Source: Podarcis erhardii
Lineage: Eukaryota
DNA length: 64,000 bases
Reading direction: 5' to 3' (one strand)
Assembly (NCBI GenBank): GCA_964252035.1
Contig: OZ176200.1
Shown here: positions 27,421 through 43,361 of the stretch, piece by piece
How the letters are laid out: each line of letters opens with the position of its first letter
Position numbering within the stretch: position 1 is the first letter of the stretch
Notes under the pieces: model-generated
Databases searched by the model: none
What the model saw: only the letters and a program-made list of their open reading frames with translations
What the model was told of the DNA's origin: nothing
Position numbers and translations under genes: made by a program

Positions 27421-27579
27421 ACCTGAGCTAATGTAGCTGGGTGTGTGTTTGTGATTCGCATACCCCCCTCTAGGGTTTTGGCAAAAGGCGTATTAGGGAG
27501 GATTTGGAGAAGACAGTGCTCTCGCATAATGAGCTTTGGGAAGGGATGTGTATTTAGGATTTTAGGCTACCACTAAAAA

Positions 27580-27674
27580 CTGAAGAAGTGTGCATGCACA
27601 CGAAAGCTCATACCAAGAACTGACTTAGTTGGTCTTTAAGGTGCTACTGGAAGGAATTTGTTTTGTTTTGACTA
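27580..27674 (+). mobile_element. Solo Neptune-type PLE pLTR fragment starting at the hammerhead core
   Basis: Near-identical to the reverse complement of about 42048-42144; flanked by an 11-bp direct repeat ACTAAAAACTG (27572-27582, 27671-27681). Confidence 0.85.
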
Positions 27675-27960
27675 AAAACTGCATTCCTGAGTGCAAGGCC
27701 TCTTGGTAGTTGTGGAAAAGAAGGGTGCCCTTTGGTTTTCCCCCCTTGCCCTTCAAAGCAGGGTGCTTCTAGTGGGGGATTTAATGAGACTATTAGTTTG
27801 ATGCTTTATGATTTATTAAAATAAAAGGGGGTGAGGGAATCCTTCCCTCAGCCTTCCCTTATATGATACTGGGGGGGGGGGGGGAATGCTGTGACGTTTT
27901 AGGGCAATTGTTGTAGGTATGGCTGTGGAAAGTTATTAAGTGGTTAGTAAAGGTACAGTA

Positions 27961-31548: not shown

Positions 31549-31595
<47 letters not shown>

Positions 31596-31599
<4 letters not shown>

Positions 31600-31795
31600 T
31601 TTCGTAGATTTTCACGGGTACAGGAATGCAGGTTTTGGTGTCCTCGGGTGTCTTCCCGTGTAAAAGTTGGGGTGTCTAGGCGACGTTTCGACGAGGTCTC
31701 ACTCACCAGCCTGAAGATGACGAGTGAGACCTCGTCGAAACGTCGCCTAGACACCCCAACTTTTACACGGGAAGACACCCGAGGACACCAAAACC

Positions 31796-31800
<5 letters not shown>
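31596..31800. mobile_element. Fold-back, pLTR-only Poseidon-type PLE insertion within (TA)n
   Basis: Minus-strand pLTR end 31596-31704 joined to plus-strand pLTR 31705-31800. 79-bp inverted arms (31626-31704 / 31722-31800), identical to 39583-39862. (AT)n on both sides (31552-31597, 31799-31844). Confidence 0.92.
31706..31749 (+). ncRNA. Minimal type I hammerhead ribozyme motif (PLE pLTR)
   Basis: CUGAAGA 31711-31717, stem II GACGAG/CUCGUC, then GAAACGUC; predicted cleavage after 31744. Stem I is weak. Confidence 0.65.
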
Positions 31801-31846
<46 letters not shown>

Positions 31847-39553: not shown

Positions 39554-39584
<31 letters not shown>

Positions 39585-39663
39585 GCTTTCGTAGATTTTC
39601 ACGGGTACAGGAATGCAGGTTTTGGTGTCCTCGGGTGTCTTCCCGTGTAAAAGTTGGGGTGTC

Positions 39664-39707
39664 TAGGCGACGTTTCGACGAGGTCTCACTCGTCATCTTC
39701 AGGCTGG
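39664..39707 (-). ncRNA. Minimal hammerhead ribozyme motif
   Basis: Reverse complement of 39768-39811; core spans 39669-39702. Confidence 0.65.
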
Positions 39708-39767
39708 TGCTTTCGGCTTCTTGTTACTGGAACAGAGCTCTGTTCCAGTAACAAGAAGCCGAAAGCA

Positions 39768-39811
39768 CCAGCCTGAAGATGACGAGTGAGACCTCGTCGA
39801 AACGTCGCCTA
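39768..39811 (+). ncRNA. Minimal hammerhead ribozyme motif
   Basis: CUGAAGA 39773-39779, stem II 39781-39786 / 39793-39798, GAAA 39799-39802, CGUC; predicted cleavage after 39806. Confidence 0.65.
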
Positions 39812-39857
39812 GACACCCCAACTTTTACACGGGAAGACACCCGAGGACACCAAAACC

Positions 39858-39896
<39 letters not shown>

Positions 39897-39973
39897 TTTC
39901 GTAGATTTTCACGGGTACAGGAATGCAGGTTTTGGTGTCCTCGGGTGTCTTCCCGTGTAAAAGTTGGGGTGTC

Positions 39974-40017
39974 TAGGCGACGTTTCGACGAGGTCTCACT
40001 CGTCATCTTCAGGCTGG
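39974..40017 (-). ncRNA. Minimal hammerhead ribozyme motif overlapping the PLE stop codon
   Basis: Core 39979-40012 on the minus strand (CUGAAGA...GAAACGUC); the TGA stop at 39996-39998 lies in the stem II loop. Confidence 0.7.
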
Positions 40018-41711
40018 TGCTTTCGGCTTCTTGTTACTGGAACAGAGCAGGATCTCAGTGTTTGAGTTCCTATAAATACTGTAGAGGGGGTGTGGTGTAT
40101 AGCCTCCAATGTTCTGGGCAGAGAGGAAGTTCCCAGGTTAGTGTGCCTTTTCTTCTTTTGTTCCTTAATTACTTGAGAGATATCTTGAGTGATTTCTTGA
40201 GTGATATCCTGAGTACCACTTAGGTGGGTCATTAGGTGTGGATTAGTTGTTAAAGTCTTTGTGTCTTGACCTCTTGAACTTTGTGAAGAGTTTTCCTGAG
40301 AAGATGGCTGTACTGTACTTAGTTGTGCTCTGGCTTGGCTTCGTGTATAGGGGCGAGCTGTGGTTTTGTGGCTTGTGTCAGCCAGATCTGTGTAGGGATT
40401 GCAGGGGGGTGCAGCATCCGGAGGTGCCACCATGGATTGGCTACTGGATGGTGTCTGTAATTCATCTGTGGAGAGGGTCTGGGTTTGGGTCTGGTGTGGT
40501 TGATTGGTGTTGGCGTTCTGTGTGCCTCTGGATCTGGTGTCAGTTTTTGTGGGGAGGGCTAATTTCCAGATGTCTGGCAAGCGGGATGTGTCGTCACGCT
40601 TGTTCATGTTGTGAGGGTGTTTCTCTATCTCGATGGCTTCCATGATTATTCTCTTGTGGTGATGTTCCGTGTTAAAGAGCAATTTGGAATCTGCAAAATT
40701 AATTTCGTGTCCTGTTTCTTTCATGTGTTGGAAAAGAGAGGAAGTTTTTTCTTCTTTTTTGACGGCATTCTTGTGTTCTGCGATACGTGCATTTATTCGT
40801 CTGTTTGTTTGTCCAATGTACGTGGCTGGGCAGACTTTGCAGGGTATTTCATAGATCCCTTGGTTTTCCAACTGGATTTTATCCTTGGGGTTTCTGAGGA
40901 TATTGGCTATTTTTTGGTTGGTGCAAAAGGCTGTTTTGATATTGTGTTTATGGAGGATTTTGCTAATTTTATCTGTAGTGCCCTTGATATAAGGAAGGAG
41001 GGCCATGCCATTGTTTTCTTCTGTGTCTTGGTTTTTGGGGGGTGTTTCCTTTTGGATTAGCTTCGTAATCCTGTTTTGCTGGTATCCATTGGCAATTAAC
41101 ACGTTTGAGAGATTCTGTAACTCAGTTGTCAAGTGGTCTTTGTCAGCCAGGCGTTTGGTTCTGGAGATGAGAGTCTTGGCTACGGAGTTTATTTGTGCAG
41201 GGTGGTGGTGTGATTGTGCATGTAAGTAGCGGTTGGTGTGTGTTTTTTTCCGGTAGATAGTGTGTCCTAGGGAGCCATCAGGTTTTTTGTAGATTAGGAC
41301 GTCAAGGAAGGGAAGTTGGTTGTTGGCTTCTATTTCCATAGTGAATTGTATTTTGGGGTGTAAGTTGTTGAGATGTGTGAGGAAGCTATCCAGTTTTTCC
41401 TTCCCGTGTGGCCAAATTACAAAGGTGTCGTCAACATATCTGAGCCAAAGTTTGGGTTTGTGTTCTGACTTGTCTAAAGCATTGGTTTCAAAGTGTTCCA
41501 TGTACAGGTTTGCGATGACCGGTGAGAGGGGTGATCCCATAGGTGCTCCTTCTATCTGTTTGTATCTTTGTCCATTGTGGATGAAGTACGTGTTGGTTAG
41601 GCAGTGGTTGGTCAGGTCCAAGATGTATTCGGGGGGATTGTATTTGTTTTGAATAGCTGTCAAGGCTTCATTAATGGGCACTTGTGTGAAGAGAGATACA
41701 ACATCGAAGCT
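39996..41711 (-). CDS. PLE ORF (5'-truncated): reverse transcriptase, GIY-YIG endonuclease and low-complexity C-tail
   Basis: RT motifs SFDVVSLFT, GAPMGSPLSP, LRYVDD, LPFLDV; PLE thumb YRKKTHTNRYL; GIY-YIG GIYEIPCKVCPATYIGQT...RIAEH. The ORF-track start MWLKQ lies in flanking DNA, so there is no real start codon. Confidence 0.93.
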   Translation of the reverse strand, partial: SFDVVSLFTQVPINEALTAIQNKYNPPEYILDLTNHCLTNTYFIHNGQRYKQIEGAPMGSPLSPVIANLYMEHFETNALDKSEHKPKLWLRYVDDTFVIWPHGKEKLDSFLTHLNNLHPKIQFTMEIEANNQLPFLDVLIYKKPDGSLGHTIYRKKTHTNRYLHAQSHHHPAQINSVAKTLISRTKRLADKDHLTTELQNLSNVLIANGYQQNRITKLIQKETPPKNQDTEENNGMALLPYIKGTTDKISKILHKHNIKTAFCTNQKIANILRNPKDKIQLENQGIYEIPCKVCPATYIGQTNRRINARIAEHKNAVKKEEKTSSLFQHMKETGHEINFADSKLLFNTEHHHKRIIMEAIEIEKHPHNMNKRDDTSRLPDIWKLALPTKTDTRSRGTQNANTNQPHQTQTQTLSTDELQTPSSSQSMVAPPDAAPPCNPYTDLADTSHKTTARPYTRSQARAQLSTVQPSSQENSSQSSRGQDTKTLTTNPHLMTHLSGTQDITQEITQDISQVIKEQKKKRHTNLGTSSLPRTLEAIHHTPSTVFIGTQTLRSCSVPVTRSRKHQPEDDE

Positions 41712-42110
41712 CTGTTTGAGCCACAAACCTTAGTGTGATATATAGCCCATTCTTCCAGCACCTTACAAAAAAAGAGAGCTTTCACCTGTCTCACCTCTCC
41801 TCCCCCTGTGTGCTGTGCTGGGGATTCACCAATTTCTTAGATTCCATTTTTTTTTTTATAATATTTTTATTGAATTTATGAAATACAGAAAAAAAAGAAT
41901 AAAAGACAGATATAACCAATTTCTTAGATTCCAGATGCCCTAAGAATATGTCGAAAATGAAGAAGCCTGTGGGCTTTCCCCTTTAAGCACGTATTTTGCT
42001 CTTACATATGTATAGTCCCAGTTACAGATAGGTAGCCGTGTTGGTCTGCCATAGTCAAAACAAAAAATTCCTTCCAGTAGCACCTTAAAGACCAACTAAG
42101 TTAGTTCTAG

Positions 42111-42148
42111 GTATGAGCTTTCGTGTGCATGCACACTTCTTCAGATAC
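42111..42148 (-). ncRNA. Minimal type I hammerhead ribozyme (Neptune-type pLTR, inverted copy)
   Basis: GUAU-CUGAAGA-A-GUGUG(CAUG)CACAC-GAAAGCUC-AUAC: 4-bp stem I, 5-bp stem II, complete core. Confidence 0.8.
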
Positions 42149-42316
42149 ACTGAAACAGAAGTCACCAGACCCTTCTATATAGTGAGAAGGTGGGGAGGGG
42201 TATTACTCAGAAGGGTGGTGGGAATGGGTGATTGGCAGATAGCTGTGATGAGCCTGTTGATGACTCTTAACGACTGCAATAGGTCTTACAGGAAAAAGCA
42301 AGGGGTGAGAAGGTGA

Positions 42317-42712
42317 CACATACACCCGGACAACACCATTACTGGCCCCAACAACATCACACATACCATCTCGGGACTATTTAATTGCTCATTGTCTAAC
42401 ATTGTGTATGCCATCAAATGCCAACAGTGTCCTTCAGCTCTCTATATTGGACAAACAGGCCAAACCTTACGCCAAAGGATAAACGGACATAAATCTGACA
42501 TCAGGAATCACAAGACTGAGAAACCAGTAGGAGAACACTTCAATCTCCCAGGACATTCTATACAAGGTCTCAAAGTAGCTGTTCTATTACAAAGGAATTT
42601 CAGAAATAGACTGGAAAGAGAAGCTGCTGAATTGCAACTTATTACCAAACTTAAAACCATGGAGAAACCTGGTCTGAACAAAGACATTGGATTCTTATCT
42701 CATTATACATGA
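42317..42712 (+). CDS. PLE GIY-YIG endonuclease C-terminal fragment (no start codon)
   Basis: Open frame HIHPDNTITGPNNITHTISGLFNCSLSNIVYAIKCQQCPSALYIGQTGQTLRQRINGH...ELQLITKL...GLNKD; the NCxxxNIVY context is recalled as Neptune-like. Confidence 0.88.
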   Translation, partial: HIHPDNTITGPNNITHTISGLFNCSLSNIVYAIKCQQCPSALYIGQTGQTLRQRINGHKSDIRNHKTEKPVGEHFNLPGHSIQGLKVAVLLQRNFRNRLEREAAELQLITKLKTMEKPGLNKDIGFLSHYT

Positions 42713-42890
42713 CAAAGCCATTTTTCACCTTCTCACCCCTTGCTTTTTCCTGTAAGACCTATTGCAGTCGTTAAGAGTCGTCAACAGGCTCATCACAGCT
42801 ATCTGCCAATCACCCATTCCCACCACCCTTCTGAGTAATACCCCTCCCCACCTTCTCACTATATAGAAGGGTCTGGTGACTTCTGTTTCA

Positions 42891-42932
42891 GTGTATCTGA
42901 AGAAGTGTGCATGCACACGAAAGCTCATATGT
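42891..42932 (+). ncRNA. Minimal type I hammerhead ribozyme at the element 3' end
   Basis: CUGAAGA 42897-42903, stem II 42905-42909 / 42914-42918, GAAA 42919-42922, GCUC; predicted cleavage after C42926. Confidence 0.8.
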
Positions 42933-43361
42933 ATAGTCGTATGCTTTTGTTGGGAAAGAAAGTTCATCATTATGGATGCTGTTAATTCTCATATTATGTG
43001 TGTCGAAGTAAAACAGGCTTGTTTTATTTTGTAAGAATATATTCTGAATTGCATGAAAAGCTAAACAAAATGCAATTCATTAATTATATTAGCCCTACTT
43101 TCAGGCTTGTCAATGCATGAGTCATTAGTTTATTTATAATTAGATTCCTAGCGCTTAATTTTTTGGTGCTGCAAAATTAATTAGCCCATGATATATTAGT
43201 TATAAAGTAGCAACAATATTAAAACCTTCCACAATGGATGTAAGAATTCCAAATAATGAATTTAAATGTGTCTCAGAGACTTATATTGCCCATAAAGCCA
43301 TGGGGTCTCAGATGATTTTATTAACATATGTCTAAGGGGGTTTTGTTTTAATTTTACACAG

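Follow-up and report, generated by a model that had tools for sequence, protein, structure and literature searches.

The DNA analysed here, a stretch of 64,000 nucleotides from contig OZ176200.1 of the lizard Podarcis erhardii (hereafter the window), contains at 42005-42938 a Penelope-like element (PLE) with one sense and one inverted arm. The sense arm ends at the predicted cleavage nucleotide (C17) of the hammerhead ribozyme that the element carries, while the inverted arm reads through the same site. We tentatively read the element as a young, 5'-truncated insertion of the Penelope/Poseidon type made by twin-primed target-primed reverse transcription (TPRT), in which the odd start of the sense arm was set by microhomology on uncut RNA; this account comes a little short of an even chance. 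The architecture is that of a textbook PLE insertion and gives a second lizard example of the rule of two start sites found in PAc (Poseidon_Ac of Anolis carolinensis). The coincidence with C17 is a single, confounded data point. The insertion is of value as this one candidate data point and as a clear case, still young, of the two-start-site (tail) layout in a second lizard PLE family.

Structure of the insertion

Repeat detection and direct reading gave two copies of a 13-bp target-site duplication (TSD; CATATGTATAGTC), at 42005-42017 on the left and 42926-42938 on the right, which are 100% identical and have no strand. They enclose a 908-bp Penelope-like insert, consisting of a 299-nt inverted arm (42018-42316, minus strand) and a 609-nt sense arm (42317-42925, plus strand), in the context of a lizard intron. 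Sequence reading and translation show that the sense arm is 5'-truncated within the open reading frame (ORF). It holds the C-terminal 131 codons of the PLE ORF and the stop codon (42317-42712, plus strand, from translation and Pfam; TGA at 42710-42712), and about 214 nt of 3' untranslated region (UTR) lie between the stop codon and the end of the arm. In sense terms, the inverted arm begins just past the stop codon (the equivalent of 42725), takes in the hammerhead and ends at +97 after C17.

The inverted repeat was first mapped at 42112-42321 and 42720-42929 (99% complementary, with a unique spacer of 398 nt). Exact re-alignment of the arms pairs 42115-42316 with 42725-42926 and leaves one mismatch in 202 positions; because the arms differ at only this position, the insertion is young. 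The junction between the arms (42316/42317) is blunt. At the 3' junction, CATA (42926-42929, plus strand) fits both the element (C17 and +1 to +3) and the TSD, so that the junction is ambiguous across these four positions and carries a microhomology of 4 nt.

Three segments make up the part of the inverted arm (minus strand) that bears on its end. An intact minimal type-I hammerhead occupies 42115-42148 (C17 at 42115, C3 at 42144, 5' strand of helix I at 42145-42148). It is followed by an ordinary 3' segment, +1 to +58 past the scissile bond (42057-42114), which is present in all other arms of this family (family 1) and absent from the sense arm here. The last segment, about +59 to +97 (42018-42056), is the canonical PLE tail, which includes an AC-rich stretch (CAGACCAACACGGCUACC) and is bounded by the two internal start sites of reverse transcriptase (RT), one proximal and one distal. 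The arm thus continues 97 nt past C17 to 42018, or 94 nt if counted after the shared CATA.

In canonical PLE insertions, an inverted 5'-truncated copy is accompanied by a tail of 30-40 bp on one side (Evgen'ev and Arkhipova 2005; Craig et al. 2021, PMC8557442). The insertion shows this signature, with an inverted 5'-truncated arm, a one-sided tail of about 34-39 nt (relative to the proximal end of the family) and a TSD. It shares with the canonical layout the inverted 5' arm, the tail on one arm, the TSD of variable length and the hammerhead in the pseudo-long terminal repeat (pLTR), but its tail-less arm is about 60 nt shorter than usual.

The insertion belongs to a PLE of the Penelope/Poseidon type with an endonuclease (EN+), known here from the end of its ORF, its insertion layout and its hammerhead. 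The end of the sense-arm ORF encodes a GIY-YIG nuclease domain (Pfam PF01541; 28.1 bits, cut-off 22.6), and the translation has a CCHH-type motif (CQQC...H-x6-H) upstream of and around YIGQTG.

The hammerhead and its predicted cleavage site

In hammerhead numbering, GAAA is G12 to A15.1, the third base after it is U16.1 and the next C is C17, with cleavage on its 3' side. The sense-arm hammerhead, from the 5' strand of helix I to C17 (42893-42926, plus strand), reads GUAU (42893-42896), CUGAAGA (42897-42903), a bulged A, GUGUGC-AU-GCACAC, GAAA (42919-42922), GCU and C17 (42926). The same hammerhead is intact on the minus strand in the inverted arm. Of the two, only this one has both strands of the 4-bp helix I (GUAU with AUAC), as target DNA takes the place of the 3' strand in the sense arm. 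The core elements CUGAAGA, GAAA and C17 occur in both arms and in six other copies. The three bases after GAAA end in U16.1, which makes C42926 the predicted C17 of the sense arm and C42115 that of the inverted arm.

This register (GAAA, three nucleotides, H17) is identical to that of the PAc ribozyme, which cleaves experimentally: there GAAACGUC has its last base at nt 29 of the ORF, and cleavage falls at 29/30. Helix II shows compensatory changes between family 1 (GUGUGC/GCACAC), Phrynocephalus (GUGGAC/GUCCAC), a second PLE family of the window (family 2; GACGAG/CUCGUC) and PAc (GCCUGC/GUGGGC), as does helix I among the four families (AUAC/GUAU, ACAU/AUGU, GC/GC and AGG/CCU). With four families compared, and hence few independent ones, this support from covariation is qualitative. 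Both arms are therefore assigned a minimal type-I hammerhead with predicted cleavage after C17, as judged from the sequence.

The ribozyme has no helix III, and instead a palindromic A15.1-N-N-U16.1 that is able to pair between copies (AGCU here, ACGU in family 2 and PAc). Such a palindrome is a hallmark of the minimal hammerheads of PLEs, which presumably work as dimers (Cervera and de la Pena 2014). The Rfam hammerhead models gave no match in the window or in 41900-43000, whether at the gathering score or at E ≤ 10. As the models include helix III, this is the expected outcome and remains compatible with a minimal hammerhead. The minimum free energy fold of the inverted-arm hammerhead as a monomer contains helices I and II. 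Cofolding of two ribozyme copies returned an intermolecular duplex through the palindromic helix II and not a dimeric hammerhead, a result with no bearing on activity.

These structures bear out most of what an earlier note on this DNA had described: a PLE with minimal hammerheads and an inverted 5' arm, bracketed by a 13-bp TSD, with the ribozyme kept intact on the minus strand of the inverted arm, a right TSD that begins at C42926, the predicted C17, and a junction ambiguous by up to 3 nt. The 94-nt tail of that note holds as a length but not as a single tail, since it comprises about 58-63 nt of ordinary 3' sequence and a canonical tail of about 34 nt.

Helix II itself (GUGUGCAUGCACAC; 42904-42918 and 42122-42136) is a perfect palindrome of 14 nt, with a predicted dimer of -32 kcal/mol. 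According to this model, pairing of two copies through the palindrome could compete with, or assist, folding of a dimeric ribozyme. In the sense arm (42893-42934), the target sequence AUAUGU stands in place of the 3' strand of helix I and pairs with the 5' strand (three Watson-Crick and three G-U pairs), and this copy may stay foldable as a ribozyme in transcripts of the plus strand.

Ends of family members relative to C17

The ends of family-1 copies were mapped in a sample of about eight mappable ends from the window, Zootoca and Logan/ENA contigs. They cluster at +58 to +63 or at +92 to +97. A second family-1 copy in the window (27572-27681, plus strand) is a sense fragment of about 88-95 bp (27580-27674) within an 11-bp TSD (ACTAAAAACTG); it begins at the CUG of the ribozyme core, crosses C17 and ends at +59 to +63. 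A Zootoca insertion (L004:8144-8319; 9-bp TSD CCACTTCCT) has a sense arm that ends at about +58 and an inverted arm that ends at +92. The copy on Logan contig L007 ends at +58 to +67, that on L009 at +96 and the inverted arm of the insertion studied here at +97. Both arms on L005, and the copies on L008 and Podarcis L001, cross C17 and then leave the contig or decay, their 3' ends being unmapped. The more distant Logan copies L003 and L006 have degenerate 3' regions with no recognisable ribozyme, and at L004:24116-24541 similarity fades about 20 nt past the stop codon.

All family-1 arms other than the present sense arm read through C17. An end at C17 was found for one of about eight mapped ends in family 1, namely this sense arm, which stops 58-60 nt before the proximal start site, and for none of the five ends in family 2. 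The latter has three insertions in the window, all in (TA)n tracts and with ends at +55 and +85. They include pLTR-only fold-backs (31578-31815 and 39562-40048) with a minimal hammerhead of the form CUGAAGA ... GAAACGUC, in which the tail is on the inverted arm (+85) and the sense arm is tail-less (+55). At 39613-39862 family 2 forms a spacerless, perfect palindrome of 250 bp, followed by a third copy.

In PAc the equivalent tail, nt 85-119, corresponds to +56 to +90 after the cut at 29/30. Three lizard PLE families thus prefer the same two ends, one about 56-63 nt and the other about 85-97 nt past the cut site. The biochemistry of PAc gives these ends a meaning: its RT starts at two internal sites on uncut RNA, and the tail is the sequence between them (Frangieh 2024, PMC11167929). 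As the family ends match two such internal start sites, the inverted arm is entirely normal and calls for no circular template. The earlier note had derived this arm from an uncleaved or a circularised template; the uncut template suffices, and the circle is not needed where all other arms cross C17. That note also expected the 3' ends of the family to peak at C17, an expectation that fails in this small sample (one of about eight, and none of five), where the ends cluster at the two internal start sites.

Family 1 and PAc are alike in being GIY-YIG PLEs with a minimal hammerhead in the register GAAA-NNU-C17, in the spacing of their start sites (about 56 and 90 nt past the cut, with a tail of about 34 nt, in PAc; +58 to +63 and +92 to +97 in family 1) and in a distal start site within an AC-rich stretch. 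They differ in the place of the ribozyme. The PAc ORF starts inside the ribozyme and its start sites lie within the ORF, whereas the family-1 ribozyme lies in the 3' UTR, 214 nt past the stop codon, and +1 to +97 contains stop codons. An ORF start at the tail ATG at +62, as in PAc, was considered and gained no support, as no homologue begins with the peptide encoded from that ATG. Further, neither genomic nor RNA-seq ends of PAc were seen at the cut site, whereas one arm ends there in the present insertion.

At the tail end of the L009 copy (reverse complement, about 500-530; ENA ERZ27260045 k141_16740), the last 11 nt or so (CCTGTAACTGA) are tandemly repeated. RT may have re-initiated or slipped at the distal start site to give this duplication; alternatively, it may be a TSD that overlaps the end of the element.

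Priming of the sense arm

The anatomy, TSD and ribozyme register were observed, as were the microhomology and the pair of canonical ends; from these we infer an uncut template and the following order of events. TPRT would have proceeded from both strands of a staggered break of 13 bp (twin priming). The top-strand nick (...TAGTC-3') would have primed 97 nt downstream of the hammerhead, where the distal internal start site lies, and its cDNA would have copied 299 nt back through the intact ribozyme to give the inverted arm with its canonical tail. The bottom-strand nick (...CATATG-3') would have skipped the proximal site (+58 to +63), started 58-60 nt further upstream and copied the 609 nt of the sense arm. 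The two cDNAs would then have been joined bluntly at 42316/42317. The odd start would most likely be due to pairing of TATG in the nicked DNA with the CAUA that spans the scissile bond (C17, A+1, U+2 and A+3), although microhomology-mediated repair of the junction by the host at integration would have the same outcome. The match to the ribozyme site would then be due to chance or, at most, to a region that is unpaired and near the bound RT.

Twin priming is familiar from L1, in which both nicked strands prime cDNAs that are joined internally, leaving an inverted and a direct segment within one TSD. The insertion resembles it in its two cDNAs, its inverted and direct segments and its single TSD. 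However, the L1 segments come from different parts of one RNA, whereas the arms here overlap by 202 nt, from which it follows that two template copies were read (two RNAs or a tandem RNA). The PAc protein likewise nicks and extends both DNA strands (Frangieh 2024, Mob DNA, PMC11167929). Ribozyme-dead PAc mutants insert normally, and uncut RNA is the dominant template (Frangieh 2024, PMC11167929).

The 702 nt of template known from the insertion contain CAUA at three sites (-564, -438 and C17 to +3). Because the last of these is the only one in the terminal 430 nt, microhomology priming on uncut RNA predicts the junction that is observed. In support, the other family-1 insertion in the window (27572-27681) has microhomology at both junctions, of 3 nt at its 5' junction and again of 4 nt (ACTA) at its 3' junction.

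Several points weigh against pairing-guided priming on uncut RNA. Of the approximately 270 registers that separate the stop codon from the proximal start site, only about 5 place a block of 4 nt across the scissile bond, or about 2% by chance. Most canonical junctions in the sample carry 0-1 nt of homology, so that pairing-guided starts are not the rule, and in vitro PAc starts at sites without homology to the DNA end (Frangieh 2024, PMC11167929). In addition, the Zootoca insertion described above, an old mini-palindrome (L004:8135-8328 with its TSD, OY735914.1), has its inner boundary within 1-2 nt of the scissile bond of the hammerhead (sense arm from -1/+1 to +58, inverted arm from +1 to +92), which suggests that ribozyme-cut RNA is occasionally reverse transcribed.

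Such a cut template could also account for the sense arm. A dimeric hammerhead within the integration complex would have cut one of two template copies, and the bottom-strand nick would have primed on the cyclic-phosphate end at C17; the other copy, uncut, would have been primed normally at +97, and the shared ATA would be chance. We regard this as plausible but lean against it. The sense arm ends on the predicted scissile nucleotide, and the PAc ribozyme, which has the same register, cleaves only with the PLE protein present, placing cleavage inside the ribonucleoprotein. PAc also yields a weak product from priming at the template's 3' end. The Zootoca insertion with TSD CCACTTCCT is independent of the one studied here, and both of its arms stop at the expected 5' end of the downstream cleavage product; two such coincidences in about 25 mapped arm ends have, by a rough estimate, a probability of about 4-9% under a uniform null. 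However, the homology extends 3 nt beyond the cut, where cut RNA cannot supply it, and ATA would follow the C by chance in 2.3-2.8% of cases given the composition of the window.

The biochemistry of PAc bears on the same question. An RNA that ends at C17 would be without the region that binds the protein, and such RNAs are inactive in vitro: PAc templates lacking the first 172 nt of the ORF gave no extension, and an RNA ended at C17 would miss 143 of these (Frangieh 2024, PMC11167929). Ribozyme mutants left PAc insertion unchanged, and in RNA-seq of Anolis no PAc reads end at the cut site (Frangieh 2024, PMC11167929). Cleavage in PAc was lost in the C3G and in the G8C mutant and was partly regained in the double mutant (Frangieh 2024, PMC11167929), whereas cleavage by the family-1 ribozyme is predicted from its sequence. 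The counts of ends at C17 given above, one in family 1 and none in family 2, also argue against cut templates. Ribozymes do set the RNA end, as a cut template would require, in other retroelements, such as R2 and L1Tc with HDV-like ribozymes at their 5' ends, and Athena/Terminon elements with hammerheads beside reverse-complement telomeric repeats. There, however, the arrangement is family-wide and functionally placed, whereas here it concerns a single arm and goes against the family norm.

Since the two coincidences (about 2% for the position of an uncut-template junction, against 2.3-2.8% for the homology beyond a cut) are equal in size, the sequence of the insertion favours neither a cut nor an uncut template. 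The proposal of the earlier note that the sense arm was primed on self-cleaved RNA holds in that the arm stops at the scissile nucleotide; it is weakened in that the CATA microhomology predicts the same junction, and we rate it as plausible without preferring it. The idea is not new, being a special case of a hypothesis published in 2014 (Cervera and de la Pena) and repeated in reviews, by which the hammerheads of PLEs process the RNA and circles may serve as templates.

A 2020 review called the role of the hammerhead in PLEs 'still a mystery', and in the sole biochemical study cleavage was dispensable and RNA-seq gave no cleaved ends (Frangieh 2024, PMC11167929). It is possible, though doubtful, that the hammerheads of PLEs cut in vivo inside the integration complex and that both products are occasionally reverse transcribed, leaving genomic fossils. 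If so, 3' ends at C17, as in this insertion, and 5' ends at +1, as in the Zootoca mini-palindrome, would be such fossils; a single insertion would document a cut and an uncut template together, and its boundaries would become a readout of ribozyme activity. An accumulation of boundaries at the scissile bond would reveal, from genome sequence alone, that cut germline RNAs exist and enter reverse transcription. Boundary evidence for in vivo cutting by PLE hammerheads would be new, as no such claim was found in the literature searched.

A later deletion is an improbable origin of the junction. The sense arm would once have ended at +58 to +63, and slippage or end-joining between two CATA repeats, that at C17 and the one at the start of the TSD, would then have removed about 60 bp. 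Repeats spaced about 62 bp apart would yield the very sequence now seen. However, one mismatch in 202 positions allows very little time for such an event, which would also have to end exactly at the edge of the TSD; by a rough estimate, a junction made at integration is likelier by a factor of ten or more.

Still more improbable is that the inverted arm was copied from a circular, retrozyme-like monomer RNA. Cervera and de la Pena (2014) put forward circular templates for PLEs, and a ligated circle has the same junction sequence as a tandem transcript. For that very reason circle and tandem transcript are indistinguishable by sequence alone, and the circle is superfluous, since every other family-1 arm crosses the site and tandem or pLTR read-through transcripts would do as well. 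Retrozymes and hammerhead circular RNAs do resemble the element in being non-coding repeats that bear hammerheads, and it has been suggested that PLEs mobilise them in animals. Unlike retrozymes, however, the insertion has no direct pair of ribozymes flanking a unit: its two hammerheads lie on opposite strands (42115-42148 minus, 42893-42926 plus), and this copy cannot release a unit.

An assembly artefact at the inverted repeat is scarcely credible: although the inverted structures of PLEs trouble short-read assemblies (Craig et al. 2021, PMC8557442), the perfect 13-bp TSD, the unique spacer of 398 nt and the clean flanks fit one real insertion.

Homologues of the coding end and the adjacent sequence

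Protein homologues of the ORF end are PLE fragments from Zootoca (87-89% identity), Podarcis (81%), geckos, agamids and turtles. In DNA, the copy on Logan contig L007 is 98% identical to the sense arm across 610 nt. The present copy is truncated at 42317, and that on L007 (233 aa), the longest of the relatives compared, also ends short of the RT; longer protein homologues exist. A 21-mer from the ribozyme, sought as an exact pattern in collections of metagenomes and of prokaryote genomes, had no match.

In Zootoca vivipara (L004:10001-24541), the GIY-YIG end of a family-1 copy is annotated as the C-terminal exon of isoforms of CARD-domain genes (LOC118078985 and neighbours). This is either a case of exonisation or an artefact of annotation.

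Just upstream of the PLE, at 41828-41933, a perfect direct repeat of 19 bp (ACCAATTTCTTAGATTCCA) surrounds an AT-rich segment of 68 bp. The repeat resembles the TSD of another small insertion, and similar AT-rich sequence lies beside the PLE copy in Podarcis L001.

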